Shown: positions 1,714-56,108 of the stretch, piece after piece
Numbering within the stretch: the first letter of the stretch is position 1
How the letters are laid out: every line of letters begins with the position of its first letter
Source of the DNA: Macrostomum lignano
Lineage: Eukaryota
Length of the DNA: 64,000 nt
Reading direction: 5' to 3'
Assembly: GCA_002269645.1 (NCBI GenBank)
Contig: NIVC01000140.1
Coordinates: forward strand, 558,001-622,000
The notes under the pieces: model-generated
Databases searched by the model: none
Told to the model about the DNA's origin: nothing
Seen by the model: the letters and a program-made list of their open reading frames with translations, nothing else
Made by a program: the position numbers and the translations under genes

Positions 1714-2484
1714 TTACGAGTATTTGTCGAATAGTAGTAAAGCGAATCGCCGAGCCGTTTTGGGCACCTTGTTCATCAACTCAACCCTAGCGATCGCCGC
1801 ACTCGCGTTCTGCATGATTGGCTTCGCCGCCTCCGCAGCCAGTTGAGCAACTTGCGACTTCGTTGCCTCTTTTGCAGTGTCGGCCAGAGCTTCCTCCAGA
1901 ATATAAGTTGCAGACTTCTGGCCAAAAGTTTCCATCGCTTCTTTGGCTCCGTCAGCAGCCATGGACATGGCTGTGTCCTTCAGTACATCACTAGCACTCG
2001 TCTTAAACACCTCCTTCATAGTTGACTTGACCGATGAATCGATCACTCCCTTGCCGAGCTCCTTGCCGAGCTCGCGCCCTATCTGCTTCTTCATGGCCTT
2101 CGATGCTTGTTTGGCGCTCGCGACAGCCGCGTTCTTGGCGGCTCCCTCCAACCCCTCCTGCGCGATCTTCTTGCCCGCTTCCTCTCCGATCTTCTTGGTG
2201 CCCTGCTTGGCTGCCTTTTTTGCTGCATCAACCACCGTATTCTTGCCAGCCTCCGTCGCACCGGAAAACGCCGACGAAAGGGAGCCCATACTATAAAAGT
2301 CTACAATGCATGAGCCTGCATCAAATGCAGCTTCAAGCAGGTTTCCATTGCATACATTGAAGACCAAGCTGGTTCCGTTGAATGCCAAGCTGACTGCAGC
2401 TCCACCAATGGGGCCGCCAACAGCAGTCACCGCTGTACACGCACTGATCTTCGCTAGCGTGGAGCTGTATGTCCTCCAGGACAT
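1714..2484 (-). CDS. 256-aa hypothetical protein: N-terminal Gly-rich hydrophobic segment followed by a long Ala/Lys/Glu amphipathic helical region
   Basis: ATG-initiated, non-repetitive, GC-rich ORF in AT-rich flanks; TAVTAVGGPIGGAAVSLAF hydrophobic stretch, then AAKKAAKQGTKKIGEEAGKKIAQEGLEGAAK-type helices. Confidence 0.7.
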   Translation of the reverse strand: MSWRTYSSTLAKISACTAVTAVGGPIGGAAVSLAFNGTSLVFNVCNGNLLEAAFDAGSCIVDFYSMGSLSSAFSGATEAGKNTVVDAAKKAAKQGTKKIGEEAGKKIAQEGLEGAAKNAAVASAKQASKAMKKQIGRELGKELGKGVIDSSVKSTMKEVFKTSASDVLKDTAMSMAADGAKEAMETFGQKSATYILEEALADTAKEATKSQVAQLAAEAAKPIMQNASAAIARVELMNKVPKTARRFALLLFDKYS

Positions 2485-3049
2485 TTCTCGGCAGAATTAC
2501 AAGCTGCTATCTAGAATGCTAGCAGCTCCACCAGTGCACGCATTCTTATTCTCGTAGAAGATATCTTGCATCAGAGCCAAAATTAGAAACCACTGAGGTT
2601 AGGAGAAAGCCGGGTACTACCAAGTTTATTTTTCATTGTGGCTTTGGCGACTCTCGAATGTCTTATTCTCGTACGAGTATTAGAGTGACGGTTTAATTAA
2701 GCAGCGAGGAAGAAAATCTCACTGAATTTAGCAATTGCGTCGCCATGGATTTTATGGTGGGGGACAAAGCCGAGAATTGTTTCAGCTTACTGTGGGGTGC
2801 GCACCTGTCAGGTGTGCGTTCAAGATGCTCGCAGATTGTGCAGGCAAAACTGAAGTTCTTTTTCTAGTGTGCAGCTGTGGTAGCTGCAGGGGTCTAAATA
2901 TAAAAATAACTCAAGCTCACTACAGGGTTTGAGAAATTCTAACTGACAAGCAATTTCATTTGAATTCAAAAATATTTTTGATATAAGTTTTGCTGTGTAA
3001 GCTGAATTAGCCAAGCAGTGTCTGGTGGCGTGATCTGATGGTTATCTTT

Positions 3050-3191
3050 TCTCTCCTCTCCTCTCCTCTCCTCTCCTCTCCTCTCCTCTCCTCTCCTCTC
3101 CTCTCCTCTCCTCTCCTCTCCTCTCCTCTCCTCTCCTCTCCTCTCCTCTCCTCTCCTCTCCTCTCCTCTCCTCTCCTCTCCTCTCCTCTCC
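3050..3191. repeat. (CTCCT)n microsatellite
   Basis: About 28 near-perfect units; paralogous tract at 27644-27775. Confidence 0.95.
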
Positions 3192-4420
3192 TTGCCTCTT
3201 TAGTATACATTCAATACGCATTTAGGGTCAGCCAGTCGTACTCAAAGTTTTTCCTCCTGAGCGTTCACAAGAATGCAGCAGTGCAGTTTACTCAATGGGC
3301 AGGTGCAGTTCGGAGAAGTTCGAACTGAGCAGTGCAGTCCGAATCTTCCTGCGTACATTTGAGTTGCTTTTTTGCGCACGGGATTGTGCTGTGAGAATGC
3401 AAGTTTGAACGACTAAACGATGAAATTGAGTCACAGCATGACGCACAAGACAGCAGCTTCTTTCTTCTTTTCGATTAAAATTGTCATGGCTGCAGTTGAA
3501 AGTGCCATAAAAATAATTGCGGAATTCTTCCATCTCTTCGCCTCCAGTTTCTAAACCTTTTGGTTCTCATCTGCTACCTGACTCTCATCTCCAGCCATCA
3601 GCTGCCCCACCAGACCCTGAGTAGCCAATTATCCTCATCTGCTCATCTGACAGTTCATTGGAAACCGCACCTCGCACAGAAGTTGTGTTCTCATAGTCCA
3701 ATGAGAACGCAGGAGCTGAAAAAGTCCTAAATAAGAGTTCTCTGAGCCCTTGTATTTCAAGGGTTCACCGCAATGTTAAATGAAAGTAAGCAAGCAGTTT
3801 GTGAGGAGAGACGTCTGGCCTCACAATGCAGTGCTCGAACTGCTCACAGAGATTTAATTTCTATTTTTGTCTCTTTGCCAAGATGGAAGTTCAGTCATTA
3901 ATGTGCGCAGCTGCAGAAAAAGCGGTTACAGAGGCCGTTGTCACCTGATCTGAGCAGCTGAGGCCATGAAAATTAAACAATTCTAGTAGAAAGGAAGCTG
4001 CAAGGTGACTGGCATGCTACTCTCAGTAGTTACTAACATAATTATTGATTATTTATTTATCATCTCAAGTCCCTTGCGATGATACAGCTACAAAGGAGAG
4101 AACTTTAAAAAAGTTTAGACTGAACTTGGCAGCCCCTAGGCAGTCTGCGTTCTTTGTAACTACCTGTAACAGACTGCACAGGTACGCTTTGGTTGGATTG
4201 TGCGCCTCTGGTAACTGCAACGCGCCATGGCCAATCATCAGCCCAGACCGATTTACGTGCGATTCGGGATTTGAGAAGATGAAACTGGTTTGAGACGGCT
4301 TAGTCTAAAACTTTTTGTAGTTTTTTCCGTGAAAGAACAGAAGCATTGAAATATGCCTTGGATTGATCTTTGTATTCCCATCTTCATGTCACTCTCTTCT
4401 CTTCCTCTCTTCTCCTCTCC

Positions 4421-4727
4421 CAGCTGCTTCTGTTCCCAATGCGATAATCAGCTGTCCTTGTCTCCCAGCTCCTTCTGTTCCCGATGCGATAATCAGCTGT
4501 CCTTGTCTCCCAACTGCTTCTGTTCCCGATGCGATAATCAGCTGTCCTTGTCTCCCAGCTGCTTCTGTTCCCAATGCGATAATCAGCTGTCCTTGTCTCC
4601 CAGCTGCTTCTGTTCCCAATGCGATAATCAGCTGTCCTTGTCTCCCAGCTGCTTCTGTTCCCGATGCGATAATCAGCTGTCCTTGTCTCCCAGCTGCTTC
4701 TGTTCCCGATGCGATAATCAGCTGTCT
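4421..4727. repeat. 45-bp minisatellite, about 7 copies
   Basis: Unit cagctgcttctgttcccaatgcgataatcagctgtccttgtctcc. Confidence 0.95.
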
Positions 4728-4736
4728 AGCTGTCTG

Positions 4737-5010
4737 CAGCTCAGGCAGTCAATGTGCTGAAGGAAGTGTCCGGAGTACCGGCCTGGATTTGTTCCATCGA
4801 TGTGTTCTGGAGCGGCTGACTGAGGCCGACAGAGCCGCGTTCACAGGGCGCTGAGAGACTGACTGGTCGTCTCGCTAAAGGGTCCGCAGAGTTGGAAGTA
4901 AGGTTGCCAGTCTTACTGAGTCAGTCTATCGCGTCGGAGCCTTCAGGACGCACGCTGGGGGCTGGGCGTCTTAAATGGGAACCTGCACATCACCTGCTCG
5001 CTGTTTCACA
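4737..5010 (+). pseudogene. Deletion-riddled relic of the 3' part of the VWA-C1A protease gene
   Basis: gtgtccggagtaccgg, catcgatgtgttctgga, gctgactgaggccgacagagccgc and acctgcacatcacctgctcgctg align in order with 25260-25870; translation LTEADRAAF versus LTEAERAAF. Confidence 0.8.
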
Positions 5011-5280
5011 TATCGATCACAAACTGCGATCTTTTAATAGCAGCAAGATGCTGGCTGCTTGTTGACAGATTTGGAGAATTTTCAATAACTTCGGATTTCT
5101 CTTTTTGTAAACTTATCAATTTTGGCTTGCTGAAATAAATTTATATCTACGAGTGTATTTCTTTTGCTTATTTCTCAGTACCTGAAGCCGAGAAGAATCG
5201 CGCTATTGTATTGTAAGTAGTAATTTTTGCACTGTTTTTCGTGCGAATCACAGTGTGTTGTGTCCCAAGTCTATCAATTA

Positions 5281-6434
5281 GCACTGACTGGCACTGACTG
5301 GCTCTGACTGACACTGACTGGCTCTGACTGGCACTGACTGGCACTGACTGGCTCTAACTGGCACTGACTGGCTCTGACTGGCTCTGACTGGCTCTGACTG
5401 ACACTGACTGGCTCTGACTGGCACTGACTGGCACTGACTGGCTCTAACTGGCACTGACTGGCTCTGACTGGCTCTGACTGGCTCTGACTGACACTGACTG
5501 GCTCTGACTGGCACTGACTGGCACTGACTGGCTCTAACTGGCACTGACTGGCTCTGACTGGCTCTGACTGGCTCTGACTGACACTGACTGGCTCTGACTG
5601 GCACTGACTGGCACTGACTGGCTCTAACTGGCACTGACTGGCTCTGACTGGCTCTGACTGGCTCTGACTGACACTGACTGGCTCTGACTGGCACTGACTG
5701 GCACTGACTGGCTCTAACTGGCACTGACTGGCTCTGACTGGCTCTGACTGGCTCTGACTGACACTGACTGGCTCTGACTGGCACTGACTGGCTCTGACTG
5801 GCACTGACTGGCACTGACTGGCTCTAACTGGCTCTGACTGGCACTGACTGGCTCTAACTGGCTCTGACTGGCTCTGACTGGCTCTAACTGGCACTGACTG
5901 GCTCTAACTGGCTCTGACTGGCTCTAACTGGCACTGACTGGCTCTAACTGGCACTGACTGGCTCTAACTGGCACTGACTGGCTCTAACTGGCTCTGACTG
6001 GCTCTAACTGGCACTGACTGGCTCTAACTGGCTCTGACTGGCTCTAACTGGCACTGACTGGCTCTAACTGGCTCTGACTGGCTCTGACTGACACTGACTG
6101 GCTCTGACTGGCACTGACTGGCTCTGACTGGCACTGACTGGCTCTGACTGGCACTGACTGGCTCTGACTGGCTCTGACTGGCTCTGACTGGCTCTGACTG
6201 GCTCTGACTGGCTCTGACTGGCTCTGACTGGCTCTGACTGGCTCTGACTGGCTCTGACTGGCACTGACTGGCACTGACTGGCACTGACTGGCACTGACTG
6301 GCACTGACTGGCTCTGACTGGCTCTGACTGGCACTGACTGGCACTGACTGGCACTGACTGGCACTGACTGGCACTGACTGGCACTGACTGGCACTGACTG
6401 GCACTAACTGGCACTGACTGGCACTGACTGGCAC
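5281..6434. repeat. 10-bp satellite (gcactgactg/gctctgactg) with a 90-bp higher-order repeat in its left part
   Basis: Variant unit acactgactg recurs at 5311, 5401, 5491, 5581, 5671 and 5761. Confidence 0.95.
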
Positions 6435-7639
6435 TTTCCAGTATCCGAGAGATAATCAAACATTCACTGGATTTAAAGAAAATAAATGAGAAAAGAAAAG
6501 TACAGATTTCGACAATGTATTCCTACTTTACCGGCCTTCCACTTTTCTGAGGAACAAAGTATACTATCTGCTTCTATCATTTAGATTTTTGGATTTTGTT
6601 GTGGAATGAAAACATGGTAAAACGGAGACAGGGTCCCTGACGTATTTCTCTATGCATTTCGGACGTTTCAGATGCTGCAAAGACCATCAGTAGCAGCGGC
6701 AGCGCAATGCAATTTCTGACGGGTATCTTCTGCTGGGAAAACACAGTTTGCTGGTGTTGTGACACGGCCGTTGAACCGATCGTGTGCTTCCCAGTTATTC
6801 CCAAGAAATTCAGAGCAGTGAGCACTTGATGGAGTCAGTCGCCCTGGCCGGACTGACTTCGGAATCTGATCGTTCGTCTCTATGACTTTAGAGACGTGGT
6901 CAGTCCGTCCCTATGACTGTCCCGTACAATATGCAGGGTCACCCTCGAAGCAAACAAGGCTGCATGGCCATTGCCACTGTTGTATCCTCGTACTCGTAGA
7001 ATTGATGGGCGAGGTCGCCGCAAAATGGCACGCAAACTGAAAGCCAATTTTCAGGTTAGGAGCGAAGGCACTTTCTCTGCCCGCTGCCCACATACGAGCT
7101 CGTATCTCCTTATATTTGAGTCCACTCACTTTTAGCCCTAGGGTCTGAAGATCCACGAGCTCAAGCCAGGTCGAAAATTACACTAAAACCAGCAGCCAAT
7201 GAGAAGGCAGAAGAGAGCACAGGCAGCTGGGTGTTGACAGCTGGGGGCCGGGTCAGCCAATCACAGCAGAATGGGGGAGTGGGGTGGTCGCAGGTCTGGT
7301 GTGTAAACAACTTAGAGGGGCAGAGAAAATGGGGTGGGGCACAATCAAGTTAGCAGCTTAGGGGGCGCAGAGAGAAAGAAACGTGTTGCAGTGCAGTGCC
7401 GGGCAACCTTGACTCAGAGCCAGAGGTTGCTCATCAGTGCACCCGGGCACAGCGCTGCAAAAAAGACTTGCTTTGATTTATTTCGGTATTAAAACTTGAA
7501 AATTATAAGCTGAACTTTATCGGCTATCAAGAAGACTCCAGACCTAAAAACTCGAATGTACATACAGAATTGTTTATCAAAGCGCAAAAAGCTAAAAGCT
7601 TAACAGAAGCTTTATCAAATGCAATTTTCAAGGCGCTGA

Positions 7640-7745
7640 AGGCGAGTGATGCAATGCTGCATTAGTGAGGTGAAGGCGAATGATGCAATGCTGCATAGTG
7701 AGGTTGAGGCGAATGATGCAATGTACACTGCAGAGGTGAAGGCGC
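7640..7745. repeat. 32-33-bp minisatellite (gatgcaatgctgcattagtgaggtgaaggc), about 3 copies
   Basis: Same family as the arrays at 21770, 32146, 45745 and 49700. Confidence 0.85.
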
Positions 7746-8232
7746 ACCCGGTCAGCACTCACTCAATCTCGCACAACCAGTGCATGATACTGTTTTAAAT
7801 TCTAAATAATTTTTCCGGATATTTTAACTTATTAAAACAAACGTTAATTTCACTGGAAGGAAATTAACGTTTGAATGCTATTTGTTAAAGCAAATTATAA
7901 ATATTTTCCATTTACCTTATTTATTGGGCCTAATTGAATATTCCCAATTTCTATCTGCTGCGATATTTATTTTATTCATAAATTAAATTATTCCAGTCAG
8001 TGCTGCCAGTTTTCCTTAAGTAAAGCCACAACTTGAGCCAAAAAATTGAAAGGATTCTCAATGGTAAGCTGCACGAAATTTCTGCTTTCCGAAATTCAGA
8101 AAAAATGAAACAGAATGAACTGGTTGTTCTTCCTGTCTTGAACAGAATGAAAGATTTTTTCATTATCATAATTTCTATATCTTAAATTCACTAAGTACAC
8201 ATATTTTATAATAAAGTTATTTATGTATCAAA

Positions 8233-8905
8233 TCTCTACATATAAAAATCAAAACTCTGTCTGTCTGTCTGTCTGTCTGTGGACAAATTACTTCGCTATG
8301 GACTCCCAAACCGCTTAACCAAATTACAGCAAACTTTACACCCACCCTAAACTCACTACGAAGAATGTCTTAGGCTACCTTTTAATTTCCTAGACTCAAG
8401 TCTTCCTACCTAAAAGTACAAAAAACTGCTCAAAATGCGCGATTTTTTCACTAAATTCTCCATAGCGCCGCTTCACTTTTACCGATTCTTTTCAAATTTG
8501 ACACAGACAATCTTCAACTATTTTGGCACAATCATGTAAAATTTCGAGTCTCAAAGTTAATCCTGAGCGGTGCTGTGCACTTTTAAAATTAGGCTGTTTT
8601 TTTCAGCGTAGCAACCACCCCAACCTCCGCCCGCCTGCTTCTCTTTCCCGATCTGGGCCGATGTGTAAAAGGGTTTCAAAATTGACTAACTTTCAGCTGC
8701 CATAAGTTTGCTCCACGTAAAGCGATTAACTTCAAATTTAACACAATTCTTCTTTGACTCATTCTCTGTCTAAATGTAAAGTCTCAACTCTGTATCTCAA
8801 TCAGGACAGAAACTGTAAGCATGTGAAGTTTGTCTGCTTTTTCTGTTGTTTGTGCCACTCACTCACTCATTCCCCCAGAGCCAGACGAAGGGTCAGGCGA
8901 TAGGA
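8233..8905 (+). mobile_element. Non-autonomous Helitron-like element; 5' end clear, 3' end uncertain
   Basis: Begins TCTCTACATATAAAAATCAAAAC(TCTG)n right after an A. Paralogous empty sites (23270-23285, 33540-33555) read tatcaga|tgct, consistent with A|T insertion. Imperfect GAA-loop hairpin at 8880-8898 but no clean CTRR. Confidence 0.5.
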
Positions 8906-10619
8906 CTGAATGTACATAGCAAATGTACAGTGTTTTGGAATAACTTTATTTATAGCCTTCTCTGCACCCTGAGAGTGGAGAGGCTACGTTTAGCCATAAC
9001 AGTTTAGTGAGAAATTCTAACCACTGCTCTCCCCTCTGTATAGGCAAACTCTGCAGCAGTTTAACAGTGGATGGCAATTGGCAAATCGAGGGAATCCAGC
9101 ATGGTTTGTAAAAGCGAAAGATTTATGAAAAGGCGATGCGATGCAATGCAATACAACCCTACTAAATTAGGCACATCATGGAAATTTTAGGTTTCTTTTA
9201 AAGGTACTGTGTAAATATTAAATGGCCTCCTAAGAAATGCGTATTTCCTTGGTTGTTAGACTGATGCAGACTGCAGTGGAGCTGAAGATACACAAATTCC
9301 TTTCAGGGCTGCAAATTGGCAAGAAAGATGACGTGATCAAAGCATGAGAACAACCATGAGAGTACTACGTCCCACAAACTGGCTTTCCAAGCAGGGATGG
9401 ACAGACTTTTACCTCAAAGGCCAGTGTGATAAATAGGCAATTAGATAATAGCATGCACGGTAAGCAATTATTTAGGCCCTAGACAAACCTACTTGGAGCG
9501 TTTGGAGATTTTAAAGCTATTAATCCTAATCGCCTATCGCCGGTCGGCGAGTCCTACCAGTCTTTCTCCAATAGCCGCAGGTACAGTACAAGAAAAGAAA
9601 GAACACGAGGGAAAACAAACCGAAAGATTTAGAGAGTGATAATCCTATATGATACAACTGATAATTGGCTAGACGGTTTAATTTGATTACTTAAGTTATA
9701 AGATTCAAGCAAATTTGCGACGCAGATAATTAGACTGATGATAACGAATAGTAACGATTAATAATAATGATTATATTACGCACTGACAAGCGGATCTCAG
9801 CTTGAAGAAGAAGAAGAAGAACCGAACACGACCACGGAGAAGACTCCTAACCCCTGGCCTAAGCCAGAACCTACACTCAAACGAGAGCCCTGCCGAACCG
9901 ACCGTTCAACGGAGTACCGACTAAATTCTATCGGCACTGCCCTTCAGTGTAACACTGAGGCCCTCGGGGTCGAGGCCGCGTACTTGATCAGATCCGACAG
10001 TCTCTATCTAACCGCGCTTGATAGCGACGACTTCAGACAGAAATTTGCCGTAGACGTTACGCCACAAGACTACTGCGGTTGAGCGGGAACAAAAAAATAT
10101 GGACCGGGGTGATGAATTCAGGCGCCTCAAAGCGCGAACCAACAAGAGGAGAAAATCGGGCCACCGGCCGGGAAGCAAAACAAAACCGGGGAAAGAGAGG
10201 GAAAAAGGCGAGATCCGATTGCCAAATACACTTTCATTTATAGTCAGAGTCACAACCCCTCAAAACCCCCTCAAGCCGGGTGGTGGTCGTCTGGCCGGCC
10301 GCTCGCTTAAGCCGAATTGCACTGTGCCCGCGGCGCCGGGTAAAATTGAAACTTGCCGCGTGCCAGGGTCCAGGCCGGTTCTGATTGGCTGGCCGCGCAA
10401 AGCTGGGGTTCGCAGACAAACTCAACCCTCCGCTGAGTCACAAACGGCGTCTAACTCTAACCTGTTTACGCAAAATTGATTCCAACTAACAAGGAAAAAG
10501 TACACCAAAAACGTATGACTAAACTAAAGCAAAATAACAATTCAATAACAATATAGAAACTAATGCAGTCAATTTACAACAAAATATACGCAAAGATGCT
10601 CACACTACACCAGATAAAG

Positions 10620-11376
10620 AATCCAGCTCATAGCTGAGGGGCAGATGAAAGTGGAAAGAAGAAGGAATAGACGATTCGAAGAGAGGAGAGGCGACAGAGG
10701 GGATAAAAGAAAAGATAAAAGATATTAGGAGAGATGAGGGGGTGAGGACGATGAGAGAGAGGGGGAGAAGAGGGGAGAGAGGAAAAGCGAGAGGAGAGAG
10801 TAGAGATGAGAGAGCAGAGAGCTGCAGATGAGAGGAGAGAGGAGACAGCAGAGAGGAGAGCAGAGAGGAAACAGGTGAAAGAAGAGATGAGAGAGTAAAG
10901 GGAAGAGAGAAGAGATAAAGATACATCTCTACATCTCTAAGGTTGTAGAGATGAGAGAGGTGGAAGGAGAGATGAGAGAGGTGGAAGGAGAGATGAGAAA
11001 TGAGAGATGAGAGATAACGGAGAGAGGAGAGTGGAGTGAGAGAAGAGAGGGAGACAGAGTATAGAAAAGGTAAGAGAAGAGAAAAGAAGAAAGGAGAAAG
11101 GAAAGTGAGGAGTCAAAAGAGGGGAAAGAAAAGAGTACAGAGGAGAGAGGTGAGAGAGCATATAAGACAGAGATGCCAGATTAAAGAGGGGGGATGAGAG
11201 AGCAGAGACGAGAGTGAACAGATAAAAGATGGGAGAGTAGAGAGAACAGAGGAGAGGTTACAGAGACGAGAGGAGAGAGGAGAGACAAAGGTAGAGAAGT
11301 GAGTGAGGAGAGAGGAGAGGAAAGGGGAGAATGGAGAGGGTAGAGAGTAAAGAGAGGAGAGATAAGAGAGAAAGAC

Positions 11377-11461
<85 letters not shown>

Positions 11462-11480
11462 TAAGAGAGAAAGACAGAGA

Positions 11481-11545
<65 letters not shown>

Positions 11546-11790
11546 CAGAGAGAAATGAGAAGAGATAAGAGAGAAAAGATAAAAGAAGAGAAAGGAAAGA
11601 TAAGAGAGCAAAGACGAGAGAGAAAAGAGGTGAGGGAAGAGACGAGAGAAGAGGGGAGAGATGAGAGAGTAGAGGAGAGAGTTAAGAGAAGAGAGAAAAG
11701 AATAGAAAGGAGAAGGAAGATAAGAGAGAAGAGGGGTGAGAGGAGAGAGGAGAGACAAGGGACGAGAGAGATGAGAGGAAACAAAGAGAC
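10620..11790. repeat. Purine-rich (GA)n / low-complexity tract
   Basis: Almost only A and G on the + strand, with pure (GA)n runs near 11380-11540. Confidence 0.95.
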
Positions 11791-36070: not shown

Positions 36071-36245
36071 GACTTATCTGCCAAGCTTTTTTCTGACTTG
36101 CTATTATCATTATTTTTGTGTCTCTTATGTTTAAGCTAAGACAGCTCTTTTAGTTAGAACTTCTTACTCATCTAGCGTTTAAAGGGGATGTTCTTTTACT
36201 AAATCGCTGTTTTCAGTTGTTTGCTACATAACAGAAATTCTTTCA

Positions 36246-46325: not shown

Positions 46326-47127
46326 ATTCGTCAGCGCTCGCTCAGGCTCGGACAACCAGTACATTGTATAGTTTTAAATTCTGAATAATTTTTCCGGATA
46401 TTTTAACTTAAAAACAACAAAACAAATGGTTTGCTAAAAGAAGTATACTACGAGCATTAAATATTTTCTGCCAGAAGCAGAATGGAAATGTTTTTTTCTA
46501 TTTTTACGATATGTCGCTTTCTTGAATATTGATTTTTTCATCAGTTGCGATAAAAAATTAATACACAATTTAAATTAATTTAGTTGTCTTCTTCAAGGGC
46601 AGCCACAACTCGAGAAAAAGCAGAACTGGATTCTCAATGGTAAGCTGCTGGAAATTTCTGCTTTCCAAAAAATGCTGTGTCCAGAATTCTCTCGCTGTTC
46701 TTCCTCTCTGGAAAAGGATAAATTATTTTTCATTATCATAACTCCTATATATTCCAAATTCATTAAGTGTATTTATATTGCAACAAAAATAATTTGTGTC
46801 AGATATTTAAACGAGATAATAAATATAACATTATAAGAAATAGGAAATGGGTTGAGAAGCACCTTTTTCGAGTTTATGAATTGCAATCATATAGTTATAC
46901 AACGAGCGAATCGATTTTTCATATTCTAAACCATTCTTATTTGATTCTGCGTGCAGGATTGCTGATCTGGCACGCCCAAGCGTGCAGAATTGATGTTGTC
47001 TATGGCAAAATATCCTTTAGGTCTAATGCATCTTACGTGCAGGATTGCACTTTATTTTTAGACAACAAGAAAACAACGAGTGAAAATTGGTTAATATCAT
47101 TACTATTTTTTCGCTTGCGATCAGATG

Positions 47128-48097
47128 CTACTCAAATACAAATTCAATGACGTTGGTGTCACCATTGGCTCGAATCTTCAAATTCTTCCGATTTTCCGGA
47201 ATAACTCGCACACAGCGCACCGAGCCCGACGTAGGATCGTTGATAACGTCAACTAGGTCACTTGCCTCAGTGCCTACAACTTGAGGGTCGGCCGTAGTAG
47301 CCACCTCCACGGCAGCCGTTAGTTGATGGCTCATAGCACAGATCGCTTGCTCTCGTTTATTCCCTCGTCGAATGTAGCGCTCAACGGATGCACCTCGCTT
47401 GTGGCCAGTCACTTTAGCGATAGTTTCGACATTAAATCCAGCGTCGTGAAGTTCTGTGATTACAGTTGCACGCACACAATGCGCAGTGTATGGCTTGGAC
47501 AATCCGGCGGACGTAGAAATTTTCTTCATCAGAGGCCCAAGGGTGTTGACTCCTACTGCACTCTTGCTGTACGAGCTCGTACCACTTACCAGATGAACGA
47601 AAGTTAGCGTTTGGTCGCAGAAAGAAGTCCACTCCGTTCCATCCTTCAACTTCGGTGACCTTTTGCTTGTACAGTCTGAACGCCTCAACTGGGCATTTGG
47701 CAGAATCTCCCTTTGACACCATCAACGCTTGCTTGTTGTCAACCATGACGGCGACGCTGGTAGAACCATGTAGATTCTTTGAATCTCCCTGAACAAGCTC
47801 AATCGCGTAGAGTCCATTGGCGAGCCGCTTCTCACAAAACCGATCAAACCTCAAACCACGCAACCATTCACGGCCTCTATTCCCATAGTAATAAATGACG
47901 TTAAAGTATACTTCCTCTTGAAGACGCACCGGATTCGACCGATCGAAGTATTTACCGAGCTTCTTCAGGTCGTCACTCTCAATAGCATCGTAGTGCTTCA
48001 CTCTTCCTCCAGATCGAAGGAAAGCGTTGCAAATGTTTTTATAGTGGCAACTAGCTTTCAATTGTAATCTCCTTTCGTTACCCCCTCCCCTCTTCAT
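47128..48097 (-). pseudogene. DUF3504/Crypton-type tyrosine recombinase, left copy, frameshifted
   Basis: Joining the two overlapping ORFs gives YYGNRGRE..SKN..CPV..FFLRP..KWY/VGVNTLG..YTAHCVRAT..VTGHK..VERY, with catalytic R, K, HxxR, H and Y present; 10-bp insertion within 47569-47582. Confidence 0.85.
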
Positions 48098-48537
48098 CTC
48101 CAGCGTGCAAGATTGATTTTGTCTATGGTTAAAATGTGGGGGCTTCGCCCCCACGCCCCCAGCGGGGGCTCTGCCCCCGCACCCCCGCTAGCAGCGGGTA
48201 ATGTCTATAGTAATATCAATTATAACCTCCTTTTTTGGGCAGAATTTAAAATGGAAGAATCAAATAAGAATGAGATTCATGCACGCCAACTCGTGCGTCT
48301 ATGGCAAAGAGCACTCGTGCGCTTCTCGTGCCATAGACGCACGAGTTGGCGTGCATGAATCTCATTCTTATTTGATTCTTCCATTTTAAATTCTGCCCAA
48401 AAAAGGAGGTTATAATTGATATTACTATAGACATTACCCGCTGCTAGCGGGGGTGCGGGGGCAGAGCCCCCGCTGGGGGCGTGGGGGCTTCGCCCCCACA
48501 TTTTAACCATAGACAAAATCAATCTTGCACGCTGGAG

Positions 48538-49507
48538 ATGAAGAGGGGAGGGGGTAACGAAAGGAGATTACAATTGAAAGCTAGTTGCCACTATAAAAAC
48601 ATTTGCAACGCTTTCCTTCGATCTGGAGGAAGAGTGAAGCACTACGATGCTATTGAGAGTGACGACCTGAAGAAGCTCGGTAAATACTTCGATCGGTCGA
48701 ATCCGGTGCGTCTTCAAGAGGAAGTATACTTTAACGTCATTTATTACTATGGGAATAGAGGCCGTGAATGGTTGCGTGGTTTGAGGTTTGATCGGTTTTG
48801 TGAGAAGCGGCTCGCCAATGGACTCTACGCGATTGAGCTTGTTCAGGGAGATTCAAAGAATCTACATGGTTCTACCAGCGTCGCCGTCATGGTTGACAAC
48901 AAGCAAGCGTTGATGGTGTCAAAGGGAGATTCTGCCAAATGCCCAGTTGAGGCGTTCAGACTGTACAAGCAAAAGGTCACCGAAGTTGAAGGATGGAACG
49001 GAGTGGACTTCTTTCTGCGACCAAACGCTAACTTTCGTTCATCTGGTAAGTGGTACGAGCTCGTACAGCAAGAGTGCAGTAGGAGTCAACACCCTTGGGC
49101 CTCTGATGAAGAAAATTTCTACGTCCGCCGGATTGTCCAAGCCATACACTGCGCATTGTGTGCGTGCAACTGTAATCACAGAACTTCACGACGCTGGATT
49201 TAATGTCGAAACTATCGCTAAAGTGACTGGCCACAAGCGAGGTGCATCCGTTGAGCGCTACATTCGACGAGGGAATAAACGAGAGCAAGCGATCTGTGCT
49301 ATGAGCCATCAACTAACGGCTGCCGTGGAGGTGGCTACTACGGCCGACCCTCAAGTTGTAGGCACTGAGGCAAGTGACCTAGTTGACGTTATCAACGATC
49401 CTACGTCGGGCTCGGTGCGCTGTGTGCGAGTTATTCCGGAAAATCGGAAGAATTTGAAGATTCGAGCCAATGGTGACACCAACGTCATTGAATTTGTATT
49501 TGAGTAG
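48538..49507 (+). pseudogene. DUF3504/Crypton-type tyrosine recombinase, right copy, frameshifted
   Basis: Mirror of the left copy with the same 10-bp insertion at 49057-49066; removing it gives an open frame of about 319 aa from ATG 48538. Confidence 0.85.
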
Positions 49508-49699
49508 CATCTGATCGCAAGCGAAAAAATAGTAATGATATTAACCAATTTTCACTCGTTGTTTTCTTGTTGTCTAAAAATAAAGTGCAATCCTGCACGT
49601 AAGATGCATTAGACCTAAAGGATATTTTGCCATAGACAACATCAATTCTGCACGCTTGGGCGTGCCAGATCAGCAATCCTGCACGCAGAATCAAATAAG

Positions 49700-49862
49700 A
49701 ATGATGTGATGCTGCATTAGTGAGGTGGGGTGAATGATGTGATGCTGCATTAGTGAGGTGGGGTGAATGATGTGATGCTGCATTAGTGAGGTGGGGTGAA
49801 TGATGTGATGCTGCATTAGTGAGGTGGGGTGAATGATGTGATGCTGCACTGCAGAGGTGAAG
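49700..49862. repeat. 33-bp minisatellite, about 5 copies, truncated by the palindrome
   Basis: Begins mid-unit at gaatg|atgtgatgctgc. Confidence 0.9.
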
Positions 49863-50519
49863 GCGCACCCGGTCAGCACTCACTCAATCTCGCACGCCCA
49901 GTGCATGATACTGTTTTAAATTCTAAATCATTTTCCGGATATTTTAACTCAATAAAACAAACGTTAATTTCACTGGAAGGAAATAAACGCTTGAATGCTA
50001 TTTGTTAAAGCATATTAGAAATATTTTCCATTTACCTTAACTATTGGGCCTAATTGAATATTCCCATTTTCTATCTGCTGCGATAATTCATTTTATACAA
50101 AATTTGAATTACTCCAGTCAGTGCTGCCAGTTCTCTTTCAGTTAAGCCACAACTTGAGAAAAAAATTGAAAGGATTCTCAATGGTAAGCTGCACGAATTT
50201 TCTGTTTTCCGAAATTTAGAAAAAATTAAACAGAATGAACTGGTTGATCTTCCTCTCTTGAACAGAATGAAATATTTTTTCATTATCATAATTTCTATAT
50301 CTTAAATTCACTAAGTACAAATATTTTATAATAAAGTTATCTATGTATCAGATGCTAAAATAGAATTAAAAGTACAAGAATACAAGAAATAATTAATGGG
50401 TTCAGAAGCACCTTTATAGAATTTATGAATTGAAATCATATCATTATACAATGAACCACATAAATGAGCACTACTTTATGTTCTACAAATTTTAAACACA
50501 CATTTTTAGCTACAATGTT

Positions 50520-52835
50520 GTGCATGTCAAGCTGAACTTTCCACCGCAACTGCAGGAGCGTCACGTGAGGTCGGTGCTCACCGGAGCTCTGCTGGACGTC
50601 TCCGGCTCCATGCAGCGCAGCTTCGACCGTCAGCAGGCAGCGGGCGCAGCCAGCTACGCATCGAAGAACAGGTGGGTCCGCTCCATCTTCCAGGTGGCCG
50701 ACCAGCTGGTCGAGCACGACGTGTCACCGACCAACCAGGTGTTCCTGGGCGGTGTGGGAGCTGAGTCACAGCCCACAGTGTTCGACATCTTGGCCTCACT
50801 GGAGGCTGGGCAGAGAAAAAAGCCAGAGCTGGAGAGGAAAAAGAAAGAACTGGAGAGGAGAAAGCAAGAGCTGGAAGATGAGGCCAGAAGAAAGAAGCAG
50901 GAGTATGAAGACCGAATAAAGAGGTTAGAATCTTCTTCAAAGCAATACATCATTGACCGAGCTCTCTCCATCCTTGAGTCCAGTGGAGCGCCGAGAGTTC
51001 GGAGTTGGGCCACAGCGAACATGGTGGACAGGAATATAAGAGACAAGCGAACTGCCTGCGTCATTCTGGACGCTCTGCAAACCGACTCGGAATTCAAACG
51101 AAAAGTTGTTGATGATTATCTGCCTGAGCAGTGCCGAAATTTTCACTGGGCGAGCGAAGCCGCGAGAGTCACTTCTGGATTTCTTGGTTCGTTTGTGGGG
51201 TCAGAAGACCCGTTGTTGGGGACGGACTCCGAAGTTAGAGCTGTTGTGAACAAATGTGAAAACTTCCTTAACGCCAAAAAGAAGCAGAAAGAAACAGAAG
51301 TAAAAGCAGAAGTAGAAGCAGAAGCAGAAGCTGAAAGAAGGAGAGCGGAGAATGAGTTGAGGGCATTGAGTCCTTTGACTCAGTTGACTCCTTTGTCCGT
51401 CTTTGCCCCAGATGAAGCTCAGAAAATCCTGCACTCCTGCAACGAAGACGCTGAGCTGACTGACGAGCGAATCACGGAGCTCCTGGACACCATCGAGCCC
51501 TTCATCTACGGAGGCACCCCGCTGATGGAGGCTCTCGAGACATCGAAAAATATTTTTTGTAGCGAGAAACGCAAAACTGAGTTCAAGCTGCTCTTCATCC
51601 TTTCTGATGGAGAGCCGGCGGACAGCAGCGGCAGCCGAGACACTGAGATGCGACAGAAACTGCACAATCTCGGGGTGACGGTCGTGTCCTGCTTCATCAC
51701 GGACACTGACATCTCTGACCCGCGACGGCTCTACAGCACACTCGACAGCGGCTGGGATCGACCTGCTGAATTTATGTTCCACATGGCCTCGACAGTCTCC
51801 ACCCAGAAGGTCCCCAGAACCCTGTTCATCCGAAAAGGCTGGACAATCGACACCGACAACAATGAGACCCGACTGTTCTTCCAGATCAATCACCCCGACC
51901 TCATCGATGAGGTCTGCGACATCGCCAAGAGCTGCGTGTGCTCGCAGGACGCGCTGTCGGACGTGCTGGCCGACGTGGACCTCGACCTGTACATCAACAG
52001 GGCCAACGAGGGCTTCGAGCCGCAGCGACAGTCGGAGCTCACCTGCTATGCAGTCGCGTCGGCGACCGTCATGCACCTGAGCATGCTCAGGGTTGTGGGT
52101 CGGGACGGCGGATATCCGGACTTCTTCCAGCTCAGAGACGAGATCGTCACTCAGTTCGGACAGCGCAGAGCCCGCACAGTCGAGGTGCTGCGGACAGTGT
52201 GCCCGGAGTACCGGCTGCAGTGCAAGGAGGTCGATGAGAGAGCCGCGCTGGACGCCGTCATCGCCAAGCGGCCAGTCGTGGCCACATTCGGCCTCACTAA
52301 GAGCGAGTGGGGCAGCTTCAAGCAGTTCTTCAAGCAGAATCCCGAAGGCATTCTCACTCAGTCCGACCTCACCGGTGGACTCGGAGCTCGGGGAGACTCT
52401 GAGCTGTTCGGACACGCGGTGGTGCTGATGAGCTTCGACAGACACAGCCTGAGGCTGATGAACTCGTGGGGCTCCGGCTGGGGCGACGGCGGCTTCTTCA
52501 GAGTGCAGAGCGCAGCCGTGCTCAGGATGAAGTTCATCGATGTGTTCTGGACCGAGGAGCAGCTGACTGAGGCCGAGAGAGCCGCCTTCAGAGAGCGCGG
52601 ACCGGGCGTCGCTGAAAAGCTGTTCGCCTCACTGAAGGGTCTGCAGACATGCATGTACAGGTGCCCGCTGTGCGGTGAGGAGTCTCTGGTGTCGGAGTTC
52701 TCGGGACACACGCTGGAGGCCAGGTGTCCCAAATGCAGGCGCAGCTTCGATGCGAACCTTGCGGGCAGCGACCTGGCGCTGAACCTGTACCTCACCTCGC
52801 TGCTGCACAAAGGGAATAAGAAGACACAGCAGTAG
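50520..52835 (+). CDS. Split-VWA + papain-like protease + Zn-ribbon protein, copy 3 (about 760-770 aa)
   Basis: All motifs intact. The ATGs used in copies 1 and 2 are out of frame here (5-bp indel), so the coding exon probably starts at the acceptor ctgcag|GAG at 50556. Confidence 0.85.
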   Translation: MHVKLNFPPQLQERHVRSVLTGALLDVSGSMQRSFDRQQAAGAASYASKNRWVRSIFQVADQLVEHDVSPTNQVFLGGVGAESQPTVFDILASLEAGQRKKPELERKKKELERRKQELEDEARRKKQEYEDRIKRLESSSKQYIIDRALSILESSGAPRVRSWATANMVDRNIRDKRTACVILDALQTDSEFKRKVVDDYLPEQCRNFHWASEAARVTSGFLGSFVGSEDPLLGTDSEVRAVVNKCENFLNAKKKQKETEVKAEVEAEAEAERRRAENELRALSPLTQLTPLSVFAPDEAQKILHSCNEDAELTDERITELLDTIEPFIYGGTPLMEALETSKNIFCSEKRKTEFKLLFILSDGEPADSSGSRDTEMRQKLHNLGVTVVSCFITDTDISDPRRLYSTLDSGWDRPAEFMFHMASTVSTQKVPRTLFIRKGWTIDTDNNETRLFFQINHPDLIDEVCDIAKSCVCSQDALSDVLADVDLDLYINRANEGFEPQRQSELTCYAVASATVMHLSMLRVVGRDGGYPDFFQLRDEIVTQFGQRRARTVEVLRTVCPEYRLQCKEVDERAALDAVIAKRPVVATFGLTKSEWGSFKQFFKQNPEGILTQSDLTGGLGARGDSELFGHAVVLMSFDRHSLRLMNSWGSGWGDGGFFRVQSAAVLRMKFIDVFWTEEQLTEAERAAFRERGPGVAEKLFASLKGLQTCMYRCPLCGEESLVSEFSGHTLEARCPKCRRSFDANLAGSDLALNLYLTSLLHKGNKKTQQ

Positions 52836-53632
52836 CGCAGTGGCATTTTATATTGAAAGCTTCCATTTGGAAAATCGCATCGGAGCTTTGAGCTGTGCCC
52901 AATTGTGACAAACTTTATTCAGTTTTGTGTCTACCATTTGGGGTCTAATAAGAGAAGCTGTCGGAGAGAGGACATCGAATTATCGATTGATTTGCATGCT
53001 GGCGATTGCACGATAACCAATCATTTTCCAGTAAATCACAATTATATTCACGTTTTTTATTCTAATATCAACCTGAATTGATTTAAAACTTGCGATTTTC
53101 TCCCACCGAGATGACTACTTTTGATACCTGTGATTGTAATTTTATAACTTTGCTAAAATTCAAACATTTCTCTTGATAATTTTCGCTTTCGAAATCTATT
53201 CCTGCCAGTTTAACAATAACAAATCATGAAATGCTTTGCCAATATGCAGCAGAGGCCGGAAGCTGAGATGGAAGTTCCACTCCTTGCTTCTGGCGAAAGG
53301 CTTTGATGCTGGCTGATAGCAAATCTTTATGACTGTTTCTTTAGAAAACCTGCGCCTATTTCTGCGCATCCAGCTGGCAATGGCTGGGTGGCTATCATAG
53401 CGATCTCAGTGCTGCAGAACCGCAGTGCTTTTACTGCCGTTGCAGTGTCTGAACGGAAAGTTTGCCTGATTTTCACACACTAATAAAATTCGTTCGATAT
53501 ACACTTGCTGCTCACTCTGTTAACAGTAGTCTCGTTGGGTCTTTTTTGTTGTCTCTTGTCTAAATGTAAAAGTGAGCATTCTGAGAACATGTTCATAGAT
53601 ATGGACATAGAGAAGCGGAACTTCCCTGGCTA

Positions 53633-53879: not shown

Positions 53880-54095
53880 AGATAGCCAGCTGTCGCTTGA
53901 GCTCGGCGAAGGCAGAGTCGCACTCGCTCTTCCAGAGGAAGGCGGTGTCCTACAGCTCTCGCAGTGATATCGCTGTCTTTGCAAAGTCAGGGATGAAATG
54001 ACGCATTAATCCCCATTGCGCTGGGATGCGGATCACCTCTTTGACGGTCGAACTCCACCAGCTGAAATCCCGTAGGGCCCAGGAACTCGGCCTGG
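53880..54095 (-). mobile_element. Gypsy-type LTR retrotransposon RT thumb/connection fragment
   Basis: Minus frame reads GLMRHFIPDFAKTAISLREL(stop)DTAFLWKSECDSAFAELKRQL, typical of the Gypsy pol segment xxFIPxFAxIAxPL...FxWxxECxxAFxxLK. Confidence 0.65.
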
Positions 54096-55196
54096 CATTA
54101 CTCCTGGTGCACTGTCAGCCTCTTTTCGCTGAGTCCTTCTGAGTCCTCCTGAAGGACTCAGACCGCCTGAAGCTGCTTGCTGTGCTCATCCGAGTTGACA
54201 GCAGGTGTTCAAGGGTTAGCAGTAATGCAAAACATTTCATAACAAAAATAGAATAACATTAAAACTGAACCATTGGGTCACTGATTAATATGCTCCTGCC
54301 ATTGGGTGCTAAACTTCCATGTATACCCAGGACAAAGAGCATCTGGTAAATCTGGGGACTGTGCACGAAATTTTCACTGCAATCTACACCCACAATCTAC
54401 ACCCATCCACTTCTTTTGTAATTGTTATTTTTCAATATTCTCTGTACCTGAATATTCTACTAATAATCCAGCGCACTTTTGATAATAATAATAGCGGTAG
54501 CCATTCAGGCAGCTCTGGTAGGTGTTTTTGAAAGCCTACTTTAAGTAGTGCTAGAACGAATCAGTACCGAACCTTCAAATTGTGAAATATAGTTTGTTTT
54601 TTGGCCTTTTATCGTCGGCAACTTTAAGCTAGCTGAAAATTTGAACCTAAAATTTCGAATTGGCTGCTTACAGAGTGCAGTCTAACATAGCTCAAGGACG
54701 AATTAAGGAGTCCTTGAACAACAGAAAAGCATAGGAAATTCAGTCCCATACTTTGTGCGAATTTAGAAACAAAGAACTGTGCGGACTCTGCAGTTGTTCC
54801 TACTTGTTAGCTTTCCTGGAAAACTGTCTACTGGCTGATCTTCAGCTGTCTTCAGTCCAAACCGAAACACGGAACTAAATGAACAGTCATTTTTTGCTCT
54901 ACTGGTGCAGTGTCTCTGAGCGTCTCAAAAAGGGAACTTTGAATGTACATTTAAACCGGGAGGAACTCGAACAGTGGCAAAATAAGCTGAGCCAATGAGG
55001 GTAGCGCCAGTCATACGAGTAGCTGCACTTTGATCATCTTTTTTACATTCCCAATTAAGTCTGCTTCCTCTTGGTACCTGCTGGAAAACCATTGTCTCAG
55101 ATATACCTGTTTAAACTTCTGAGAAGACTTGCTAAGGCTATAGGTAGAGCTGTTTCCATAGAATACGGTGGACCACAAGCAGTAGACATCGGAGTC

Positions 55197-56108
55197 ATGG
55201 CTGAGAAGCTGGGAGAGATCGGCGACGTCCTGAGCGGCATCAGCAAGGCTGTCACGACGATGAAGTCGCTCCGAGACGATAGAACCGAGCTGTACAGAGT
55301 TATCGAGCAAACGAAGAAGCACGCCGGCGTGGTGGAGCAACTCGACCTGCCCAATGAGCCGCAGCTGAAGGAACTGAAGCTGCAGCTGGTAGAAGTGCGG
55401 AGCTCCGGATCCAAGCTGGAAGTCTGGCTCCAGAGCTTCGGGAAAGAAATCCAAGTGTTCGAGAGATTCGTAACAACAAAAATCAAGAGCAGCATCCCTC
55501 CAGAAGTAGTCAGAGAGTTCTGTGAGATGCTCATCTCTACTCATAGAATGGCGAGCGACTTCTCAGCCGCATTCGATGACTTCATCGGCCACTTGCTCAA
55601 AGCACAGAAAATCGCCACGCAACTCACTGATAAGCTGAAGCAGAAAGCGGATGAGCAGGAGAAGAAAGCGAACAGCACGAGAAACAGGGGAGCGGCAGCG
55701 ACTACCGGCCTGGCGATCGGAGCGATCGGTCTCGCGGCTCTCGGCTTCTTCACCGGCGGACTCGCCTGGATTGCCGCTGGCGCCGCTGCTGGTTGTGTGG
55801 TTGGGGCCGGTGTGGCGGCCAGGAAAACTGTGGTCGACGTGAAGGCGATGCGTGAGCTGGCCAGAGGCTTCAGAGACGACTCAAACCAACTGGAAGTCAT
55901 CGCCAAGCAGCTGGAGAGCAGCGGAGACAAAGCCGAAACCATCCAGCTGGACAAGAAGGCGATCGAAGCGCTGCAGACCGCACTGGAATTCTTTCGCAAA
56001 GACCTGGAGAAGGACGACCGCATCGCTCTGCAGCAGGAGCAGCTCGATGAGCAGAGGGCAGAGATCGCCGAGTTGAAGAACAAGATGAGGATTCAAGGCA
56101 TCAAATAG
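55197..56108 (+). CDS. Coiled-coil/hydrophobic-hairpin protein, copy C (303 aa), divergent paralog of copies A and B
   Basis: ATG in good context (gtcATGG); aligns with copy B along its length (EVWLQSF/EVWINSF, MASDFS/MACDFS, TIQLDKKAIEALQTALEFF/TIQVDEAAIKALRTALQFF); hairpin GLAIGAIGLAALGFFTGGLAWIAAGAAAGCVVGAGVAA; a single EKDDRIA unit. Confidence 0.85.
   Translation: MAEKLGEIGDVLSGISKAVTTMKSLRDDRTELYRVIEQTKKHAGVVEQLDLPNEPQLKELKLQLVEVRSSGSKLEVWLQSFGKEIQVFERFVTTKIKSSIPPEVVREFCEMLISTHRMASDFSAAFDDFIGHLLKAQKIATQLTDKLKQKADEQEKKANSTRNRGAAATTGLAIGAIGLAALGFFTGGLAWIAAGAAAGCVVGAGVAARKTVVDVKAMRELARGFRDDSNQLEVIAKQLESSGDKAETIQLDKKAIEALQTALEFFRKDLEKDDRIALQQEQLDEQRAEIAELKNKMRIQGIK

Follow-up and report, generated by a model that had tools for sequence, protein, structure and literature searches.

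The 64,000-nucleotide stretch of Macrostomum lignano DNA considered here (contig NIVC01000140.1 of assembly GCA_002269645.1, positions 558,001 to 622,000; hereafter the window, whose own numbering is used throughout) holds members of two gene families that alternate along the sequence. One comprises candidate proteases in which a domain of the von Willebrand factor A type (vWA) with a metal-ion-dependent adhesion site (MIDAS) would be followed by a papain-fold peptidase and a zinc ribbon, while the other comprises helical proteins with a Gly/Ala-rich hydrophobic hairpin. A first-pass annotation had proposed that together they form a protease-gated pore-forming immune cluster. The open reading frames (ORFs) that it listed are all confirmed, in position as well as in order, but we think it probable that these are two independent fast-turnover families lying side by side, which have been amplified together by segmental duplication. 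The genes in question are the following.

18296-19606, minus strand: hairpin A (ORF 18296-19471), the copy-1 allele of hairpin B
23444-25897, plus strand: protease 1, 817 aa, an intact ATG ORF
33713-36070, plus strand: protease 2, 785 aa, an intact ATG ORF with the motifs of protease 1, without its hydrophobic insert
41796-43064, minus strand: hairpin B, 422 aa from its ATG (ORF 41796-43172)
50520-52835, plus strand: protease 3, 771 codons, with catalytic, MIDAS and zinc-ribbon motifs all intact
55197-56108, plus strand: hairpin C, 303 aa from its ATG (ORF 55071-56108)

The alternation of these genes stems largely from a ~24.6-kb tandem segmental duplication, which self-comparison of the window reveals as 2778..27358 versus 27358..52842, with blocks that are 87-99% identical. 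The order described in the first pass is right, but it is mostly one unit that has been copied and not a pairing that arose repeatedly, and the window therefore offers a single arrangement rather than independent evidence that the two families belong together. Hairpin C, 2.4 kb downstream of protease 3, is not part of the duplicated unit. There is a caution in this, namely that segmental duplication alone can produce an apparently 'operon-like' alternation in a eukaryotic window.

Judging from their sequences, the proteases and hairpins are genes and not chance ORFs, because the homologues of the proteases are full-length, hairpin B has a 94% match and the ratio of non-synonymous to synonymous substitution rates (dN/dS) is <1. 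Eukaryotic ATG starts can be placed at 19606 (hairpin A), 43064 (hairpin B) and 55197 (hairpin C), where they align with the MxEKLxEI starts of paralogues; the longer hairpin ORFs, which open with TTG or GTG, are artefacts of applying bacterial start rules. Hairpin A, although 92% identical to hairpin B at the protein level, is probably a null allele, because a CGA>TGA change at 19559-19561 introduces a nonsense codon at codon 16 counted from the real ATG. In protease 3, a 5-nt indel (GCTGA) shifts the ATGs used by proteases 1 and 2 into another frame, so that no in-frame ATG precedes the MIDAS motif; the same indel is found in the protease of a second M. lignano locus, L002 (window 50515-50560; L002 6380-6530). 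Since the M. lignano spliced leader (SL) ends in ATG and ~30% of genes are trans-spliced (PMC8629364), it is possible that the SL donates the start of protease 3 at an in-frame acceptor (CTGCAG/GAGCGT) near position 50554.

The remaining features of the duplicated region, and the lone hairpin ORF that precedes it, are listed below.

7641..8230, plus strand: empty protease slot, with the ~590-bp block present and no protease after it
15501-15719, plus strand: protease N-terminus relic in copy 1 (tblastn against residues 15-104 of protease 1, 40% identity)
20688..22795, no strand: satellites between hairpin A and protease 1 (20-mer x33 at 20688-21355, 34-mer x31 at 21760-22795)
40242-40460, plus strand: protease N-terminus relic in copy 2 (tblastn)
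46932..49703, no strand: inverted repeat between hairpin B and protease 3, with perfect 1375-nt arms (100% complementary) and a 22-nt spacer
1714-2484, minus strand: lone hairpin ORF, 256 aa, with an N-terminal Gly-rich hydrophobic segment (residues 13-35) and then an A/K/E-rich helical region

Protease slots are marked by a ~590-bp block (7641-8230, 22692-23279, 32958-33548 and 49762-50350). At the empty slot in copy 1, 3.85 kb of unrelated sequence (8231-12084) replaces, with sharp breakpoints, the segment that contains protease 2 (33549-36823); the replacement includes an AG-rich low-complexity tract (11197-11779). Immediately upstream of the block, a 34-mer array is present in three of the four slots, while in the fourth only 3-5 copies of the 34-mer abut the block and the main array is 3.4 kb off. 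The satellite pair (20-mer and 34-mer) that separates hairpin A from protease 1 is also found between hairpin B and protease 3, where the spacer (7.5 kb) is twice as long as its counterpart (3.8 kb) because of the inverted repeat. Each arm of this repeat contains frameshifted, Crypton-like tyrosine-recombinase ORFs (Phage_integrase E 1.7e-7, weak DUF3504), and the whole arose either by insertion of a palindromic transposon or as an artefact of foldback during assembly. The two units differ in several respects – protease 2 present or replaced, the palindrome, repeat numbers – and are therefore distinct loci rather than a collapsed or duplicated read. Birth-and-death evolution, which had been proposed for both families, is well documented: intact copies coexist with the CGA>TGA allele and two protease relics, and a 42-bp repeat counts 7.0 copies in hairpin A versus 6.0 in hairpin B. 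The proteases also vary among themselves in a 42-bp repeat.

The claim that the long ORFs of this region belong to just two families plus one lone ORF needs correcting, since other long ORFs are present as well, these being satellite-derived, antisense to the GC-rich proteases, or fragments of Crypton-like recombinases. Large satellite arrays with periods of 20, 34, 45 and 49 bp occupy 4416-6435, 20688-22795, 26168-26917, 29373-31042, 32143-33063 and 44130-46323, and several of them yield spurious ORFs of 250-570 aa in multiple frames. The antisense ORFs are on the minus strand inside the three proteases, at 23894-26008 (704 aa), 34574-36058 (494 aa) and 51201-52445 (414 aa), and most likely arise from the high GC content of the proteases (0.56 vs ~0.44 in the flanks) and from codon bias rather than being genes.

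The lone hairpin ORF and hairpins A-C are unrelated (BLASTP gave no match to hairpin C), and no relatives and no Pfam match were detected for it beyond an intact copy in L002 (14402-15160), which is 83.6% identical. With a dN/dS of 1.09 between these two copies, it would appear either to evolve very fast or to be free of constraint at the protein level.

The protease family

The domain assignment made in the first pass – vWA, papain and zinc ribbon – has stood up well. The motifs on which it rests map as follows in protease 1, all of them on the plus strand.

23519-23536, plus strand: MIDAS motif DVSGSM
24137-24232, plus strand: Gly/Ala hydrophobic insert (residues 232-263)
25103-25114, plus strand: catalytic Cys (TCYA; C555 of protease 1)
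25472-25486, plus strand: His (GHAVV)
25523-25534, plus strand: Asn (NSWG)
25724-25798, plus strand: zinc ribbon

Alignment of 28 family members shows that the MIDAS residues D26/S28/S30, the papain triad C509 (TCYA), H632 (GHAVV) and N648 (NSWG), and the zinc-ribbon cysteines C715/C718/C736/C739 (CxxC...CxxC) are invariant, as is much of a C-terminal helix (LALNLYLTSL), while at least 90% of the sequences share T333 and D363. The catalytic triad and metal-binding residues are present in all three proteases of the window. The 28-member consensus opens directly at the vWA beta-1 strand and MIDAS (MSxLTGILxDVSGSM), with no signal peptide and no propeptide ahead of the peptidase domain; the absence of a signal peptide makes these proteins presumably cytosolic.

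An AlphaFold2 model of protease 3, with a predicted local distance difference test score (pLDDT) of 75, has its vWA domain split by a ~200-aa helical insert. When this model was compared with the PDB using Foldseek, 54 matches were obtained at E<=0.001 (papain itself at E 1.7e-5), and the 50 that are listed are all papain-family proteins (papain, cathepsins, xylellain and others) with a probability of 1.00, so that on this model the peptidase domain is a papain fold. A profile of the family searched against the PDB found the vWA domains of TRAP and collagen VI (E 2e-4 to 5e-3), as well as xylellain and DPP1. Pfam is less generous: the window proteases score 17.6-18.2 bits on Peptidase_C1, under the cut-off of 20.7 and with a match confined to the C-terminal (His/Asn) half, and 13.8-17.3 bits on VWA_2/VWA_3, where the cut-off is 27. 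P0036, a relative from the coral Acropora, does reach 21.4 bits on Peptidase_C1 (against the same cut-off of 20.7), and many homologues have precomputed vWA matches (PF00092/PF13519).

Constraint is unevenly distributed along these proteins. The dN/dS between paralogues is ~0.5 overall, 0.4-0.5 in the vWA core, papain domain and zinc ribbon, and 0.82 in the variable insert. It is in this insert that protease 1, alone among the window proteases, has the Gly/Ala-rich hydrophobic sequence KFAAVGAGVLGGLLTGGLPPLVMGAAAATTAF. Hydrophobic segments occur in the same variable insert in 16 of 110 homologues from other phyla, about a dozen of which have a helix-Pro/Gly-helix directly after an LPxECR motif, and some family members may be membrane-associated on their own. 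In the protease 1 insert, the TGGL turn is similar to FFTGGLA, the turn seen in the hairpin family and in fish ApoL-like proteins.

As for its distribution, the combination of vWA (MIDAS), papain and zinc ribbon defines a conserved animal family in corals, annelids, nemerteans and flatworms, mostly single-exon and often in tandem. Protease 1 has 171 homologues, the best 120 of which all have E < 1e-155 and are mostly 38-45% identical over ~97% of the length. Those with a named source come from Acropora, Montipora, Owenia (an annelid) and Tubulanus (a nemertean), all annotated as 'uncharacterized', with many others on metagenome contigs of coral-associated or marine origin. In Owenia and Tubulanus each gene has a single exon, and two long ENA contigs bear tandem arrays (three copies on L006 and two on L011) that are without hairpins. 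A QRICH1-domain ORF by the coral proteases of L011 was considered as a counterpart of the DUF3504/recombinase ORFs near protease 3, and discarded for want of any similarity. Two other contigs have a conserved ORF of 136-153 aa without Pfam match ~2 kb upstream of the protease (L036 323-733 and L042 4273-4734), which may belong to a fused protein as its upstream exon or domain.

A clue to function comes from the Acropora gene models P0034 and P0036, in which a GT4-conflict glycosyltransferase is N-terminal to the vWA-papain module, P0036 having in addition a TRADD-like N domain. Combinations of GT4 and TRADD-N have been described as hubs of lineage-specifically expanded invertebrate immune proteins, and a vWA with a C-terminal effector is the core of ternary conflict systems in bacteria (Kaur et al. 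2021, PMC8195603). Provided that they are not merged gene models, these fusions hint at a tie between the protease and the proposed immune hubs. The immune setting put forward in the first pass is plausible for the protease on these grounds. No description of the vWA-papain-zinc-ribbon architecture was found in Kaur et al. 2021 (PMC8195603), and a literature search on the domain combination and on the M. lignano gene identifiers found nothing specific. PADLOC defence models gave no match for the proteases. A prokaryotic or viral origin was also looked into and set aside, no confirmed relative being found in 185,579 bacterial/archaeal genomes and IMG/VR with short family patterns, which distant relatives could escape.

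The hairpin family

Hairpin B, which is 94% identical to the M. lignano protein BOX15_Mlig020299g1, consists of an N-terminal helical region, a Gly/Ala-rich two-helix hydrophobic hairpin, a further helix, six copies of a 14-aa acidic repeat (EKDDRIAQLETEGV, encoded by the 42-bp repeat) and a C-terminal tail. Hairpin C is 41% identical to it. Purifying selection acts on hairpin B (its dN/dS against the L002 paralogue is 0.31), and selection on hairpin A, the nonsense allele, looks relaxed (dN/dS 0.5-0.7).

A HMMER search of 1.8 billion representative sequences with a hairpin profile found eight proteins at E <= 1e-30 – six that are named as M. lignano, one without source record and one read-through chimera (P0127) – and high-confidence members would thus seem to be found only in Macrostomum (M. 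lignano). P0127 combines protease 3 (97%) and hairpin C (92%) with the retroelement ORFs of the window, and therefore represents the same locus type. These retroelement ORFs belong to a GC-rich (0.65) remnant at the window end (61977-63373), with an RNase H ORF (Pfam E 1.6e-12), and in P0127 they recur downstream of the protease 3 and hairpin C copies. This RNase H, together with the scarcity of long ORFs and the abundance of satellites, gives the window a eukaryotic look, and the hairpin homologues at E <= 1e-30 with a traced source, which come from M. lignano, mark it as flatworm DNA. Weaker matches, at E 1e-5 to 1e-3, comprise three proteins of ~300 aa with the same layout on short transcript-like contigs, as well as P0135, an unnamed 1171-aa model aligned over the same region. 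P0123, a bacterial OmpA-like protein, was excluded as a relative since it matches hairpin B through the repeat alone, and no relatives were found in JGI metagenomes.

Two fish proteins that are ApoL-positive also match the hairpin profile, with E values of 9e-5 and 2.5e-4 in the 1.8 billion sequences. Their scores on Pfam ApoL are 26.1 bits for P0134 (Mugil), against a cut-off of 25.9, and 23.8 bits for P0132 (Lates). Comparing hairpin and fish ApoL-like profiles with hhalign gives 95.5% probability, over just 55 Gly/Ala-rich, compositionally biased columns, in which ALGFFTGGLA of the hairpin family faces LAFFTGGLA and AAPFTGGLS of the fish proteins. None of 11 hairpin-family members matches Pfam ApoL (PF05461) at E<=10.

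The suggestion that these are alpha-pore-forming-toxin-like proteins is weakly favoured by structural comparison. An AlphaFold2 model of hairpin C is all-helical (pLDDT 72, the hairpin segment itself being <50), and ClyA-family toxins (AhlB, AhlC, ClyA, SmhB, MakA and MakB) make up roughly two-thirds of its top 50 Foldseek matches. Against this, all of these matches are sub-significant, with a best E of 0.037 and a range to 0.3, template-modelling (TM) scores of 0.2-0.4 and root-mean-square deviations of 11-19 A. Several other leads were followed and abandoned, namely (i) sub-threshold Pfam matches to Holin-X, SLATT_1, Rv2743c and SesA (2TM/holin-like) and to coiled-coil families, none of which was accepted, (ii) the top match of the hairpin profile in the PDB, a mitoribosomal protein that reflects coiled-coil bias, and Hbl-L1, whose E of 3.2 is at chance level, and (iii) PADLOC matches to LmuB, LeoBC, JetC and PDC-M46B, which sit on coiled-coil stretches. 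The other weak PDB matches of the profile are to coiled-coil and syntaxin Habc domains.

The most likely function of the hairpin proteins is that of membrane-inserting helical proteins, which we favour because their predicted layout (helical N-terminus, hydrophobic hairpin, C-terminal coiled coil) is that of ApoL. The membrane-insertion element of ClyA also sits at a position comparable to that of the hydrophobic hairpin in this family. The hairpin proteins would at best be candidate members of the ApoL or ClyA family.

Linkage of the two families and rival explanations

Whether the two families travel together was assessed in 85 loci (608 kb), of which six are M. lignano hairpin loci and 79 are protease loci from other animals and metagenomes, namely Owenia (L005), Tubulanus (L008), a Tara contig (L007), the ENA contigs L006 and L011, and 74 metagenome contigs (L012-L085). 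These metagenome contigs are short, and ORF-based scans miss many-intron genes. Only L002 (contig NIVC01002635.1) reproduces the arrangement of the window, in compact form, with the same succession of protease, hairpin B, N-terminal relic and lone ORF at 84-94% identity, and by its sequence it is a paralogous or homeologous copy rather than an independent case. The other five M. lignano loci, which have three hairpin genes (L001), two plus fragments (L003), one (L004), one (L009) and two (L010), are free of proteases for 10 kb in both directions. Conversely, no hairpin-family ORF was found at any of the 79 protease loci with two hairpin HMMs (hidden Markov models), and clustering of the flanking ORFs at protease loci revealed no recurrent neighbour, in an ORF-based analysis that many-intron genes would escape. 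Linkage is therefore seen in just one locus type (the window, L002 and P0127), and the families are largely unlinked in their relatives.

The protease-hairpin adjacency is thus best read as local duplication history, and nothing in these comparisons indicates that the families need each other. In the scenario that we consider probable, two unrelated families happen to adjoin in a repeat-rich region, and a recent ~24.6-kb tandem duplication copied both as a block. Each would then act on its own account. The vWA/MIDAS module of the protease would bind a partner or nucleate an assembly, and the C-terminal papain-fold peptidase, the effector, would thereby be positioned or activated, probably, given its architecture, in innate immunity or cell death. 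The hairpin proteins would be soluble or peripheral helical bundles with a buried glycine-zipper hairpin, which some trigger might let insert into the membrane in the manner of ApoL or ClyA.

Several observations weigh against this reading. Hairpins B and C, which have diverged to 41% identity, both flank proteases here, an unrelated hydrophobic-hairpin ORF is also nearby, and hairpin genes near proteases exceed naive expectation. The arrangement has been kept in L002, at a paralogous locus that is 84-94% identical. Other pairs may exist elsewhere in M. lignano, since the deposited annotation is without protease calls, that of L002 included. Finally, M. lignano has operons and SL trans-splicing (PMC8629364), and co-transcription of protease 3 and hairpin C, which are on the same strand 2.4 kb apart, is conceivable.

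Foremost among the alternatives, although we would regard it as unlikely, is that the hairpins have no pore function and the protease no part in immunity: the hairpins would be ordinary monotopic or hairpin-anchored coiled-coil proteins, such as endoplasmic reticulum, lipid-droplet or secretory-granule scaffolds or fast-evolving reproductive proteins, and the protease a non-immune cytosolic peptidase with a regulatory or housekeeping role. This would agree with the failure of any hairpin protein to reach a Pfam threshold, with Foldseek matches that are all above E 0.03 and at TM <= 0.4 (long helical bundles readily match each other), with a PDB profile search that gives only the weak coiled-coil and syntaxin Habc matches, and with the lineage-specific nature of the family, which is typical of structural or reproductive novelties. 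It accounts poorly, however, for a Gly/Ala-zipper helix-turn-helix placed between long amphipathic helices, at the position of the ClyA/ApoL membrane-insertion element, and for the dominance of ClyA-family toxins among the fold matches, which are not a random mix. Moreover, the patchiness of the protease, its tandem expansions and its GT4-conflict/TRADD-N fusions fit conflict genes better than housekeeping ones.

In the functional system envisaged in the first pass, the vWA-papain protein would act as sensor/activator and cut the hairpin protein next door, for instance by taking off the repeat-rich coiled coil at its C-terminus, so that an alpha-helical pore is freed; this strikes us as improbable. 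There are attractive elements in it, since the peptidase looks catalytically competent and the MIDAS intact, the hairpins resemble ClyA-type toxins in topology and ApoL in hairpin motif, and the pore activity of ApoL is controlled by a C-terminal leucine zipper (PMC7891394). Hairpins B and C adjoin proteases in the window and in paralogous copies, coral gene models join the protease module to conflict/immune domains, the coiled-coil insert specific to Macrostomum proteases might pair with the acidic coiled-coil repeat of hairpins A and B, and, operons being present in this species, co-transcription of protease 3 with hairpin C is conceivable. However, the adjacency is one arrangement amplified by segmental duplication, five of the six sampled M. 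lignano hairpin loci are without a protease within 10 kb, and the protease family thrives in four phyla with neither a detectable hairpin partner nor a recurrent neighbour. Protease 1 is intact although the adjoining hairpin A bears a nonsense allele, and the fold and ApoL similarities are sub-threshold or limited to a low-complexity hairpin. The gasdermin operons that inspired the idea are those of bacteria and fungi, whereas gene adjacency in an animal genome carries far less functional weight and is weak evidence of coupling. We attach a similarly slim chance to the related notion that the Macrostomum protease and the ApoL/ClyA-like hairpins are a two-component cell-death or immune module, whose parts would bind via MIDAS or coiled-coil contacts, the cytosolic protease then cutting the hairpin protein to let an alpha-helical pore form.

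Finally, there is very little to be said for a largely non-functional or artefactual pattern (pseudogenes in decay among satellites, or a duplication and palindrome produced by faulty assembly of a hidden-polyploid genome), which could draw on the nonsense allele, the relics, the missing ATG of protease 3, the 100% perfect inverted repeat, the dN/dS of the lone ORF and the redundancy of M. lignano assemblies (PMC10468722, PMC8629364), but runs up against intact proteases 1 and 2 and hairpins B and C with dN/dS of 0.3-0.6, catalytic and metal-binding residues that are all conserved in the three proteases, duplicated units whose structural differences make them distinct loci, and an SL RNA ending in ATG that could supply the protease 3 start (PMC8629364).

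Comparison with known systems

The protease can be compared first with the vWA-MoxR ternary conflict systems (PMC7159879; PMC8195603). As in these systems, a single polypeptide contains a vWA, a helical region and a C-terminal effector, which here would be the peptidase, and the genes have a patchy distribution, have expanded in particular lineages and, in Acropora models, are linked to GT4-conflict and TRADD-N. Unlike them, the protease is an animal, single-gene affair, with no MoxR AAA+ ATPase or third component in the window, and the effector, a C1 papain-fold peptidase followed by a zinc ribbon, is a combination that was not found described. With the papain family (MEROPS C1) it shares the predicted fold and the Cys...His...Asn triad, but it departs from classical C1A enzymes by lacking a signal peptide and propeptide, and by having its peptidase behind a vWA and ahead of a zinc ribbon.

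For the hairpin family, one analogy is ApoL, whose activity depends on a transmembrane hairpin as well as on a C-terminal leucine zipper (PMC7891394), and whose layout – helical N-terminus, membrane helical hairpin, C-terminal coiled coil/leucine zipper – is the same (PMC7891394). The likeness nevertheless covers only those ~55 Gly/Ala-rich columns, and the N- and C-terminal regions of the hairpin proteins are without detectable similarity to ApoL. With the ClyA family (ClyA/HlyE, AhlB/C, SmhB, MakA, Hbl/Nhe) the hairpin proteins have in common an elongated all-helical bundle of ~300-340 aa and a hydrophobic element ~55-70% along the chain; they differ from these bacterial secreted toxins in that the resemblance in fold is sub-significant and no sequence similarity exceeds the chance-level match to Hbl-L1. 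M. lignano is a tractable animal (RNA interference, transgenesis, in situ hybridisation), in which both families, and any coupling between them, are directly testable.

The locus as a whole can be compared with bacterial and fungal protease-gasdermin modules, in which a protease gene likewise adjoins the gene of a putative membrane-active protein with a C-terminal extension. There are important differences, however, since (i) the hairpin proteins are predicted to be all-alpha and there is no gasdermin among their fold matches, (ii) the protease is a vWA-papain, not a caspase-like enzyme or subtilase, in an animal genome and (iii) neither paralogous nor orthologous loci conserve the adjacency. 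What would be new here is the components – a papain/zinc-ribbon effector on a vWA, and an ApoL/ClyA-like hairpin protein – while their combination into a 'system' is conjectural. The protease family offers a concrete candidate for an invertebrate immune or cell-death protease of a new kind, and Macrostomum has a private, multi-locus helical family with a glycine-zipper hairpin that resembles the membrane-insertion element of ApoL. Were the two to form a module after all, it would be an animal, all-alpha counterpart of caspase-gasdermin, and the vWA-papain family, widespread among invertebrates, would make up a new class of immune effector proteases.

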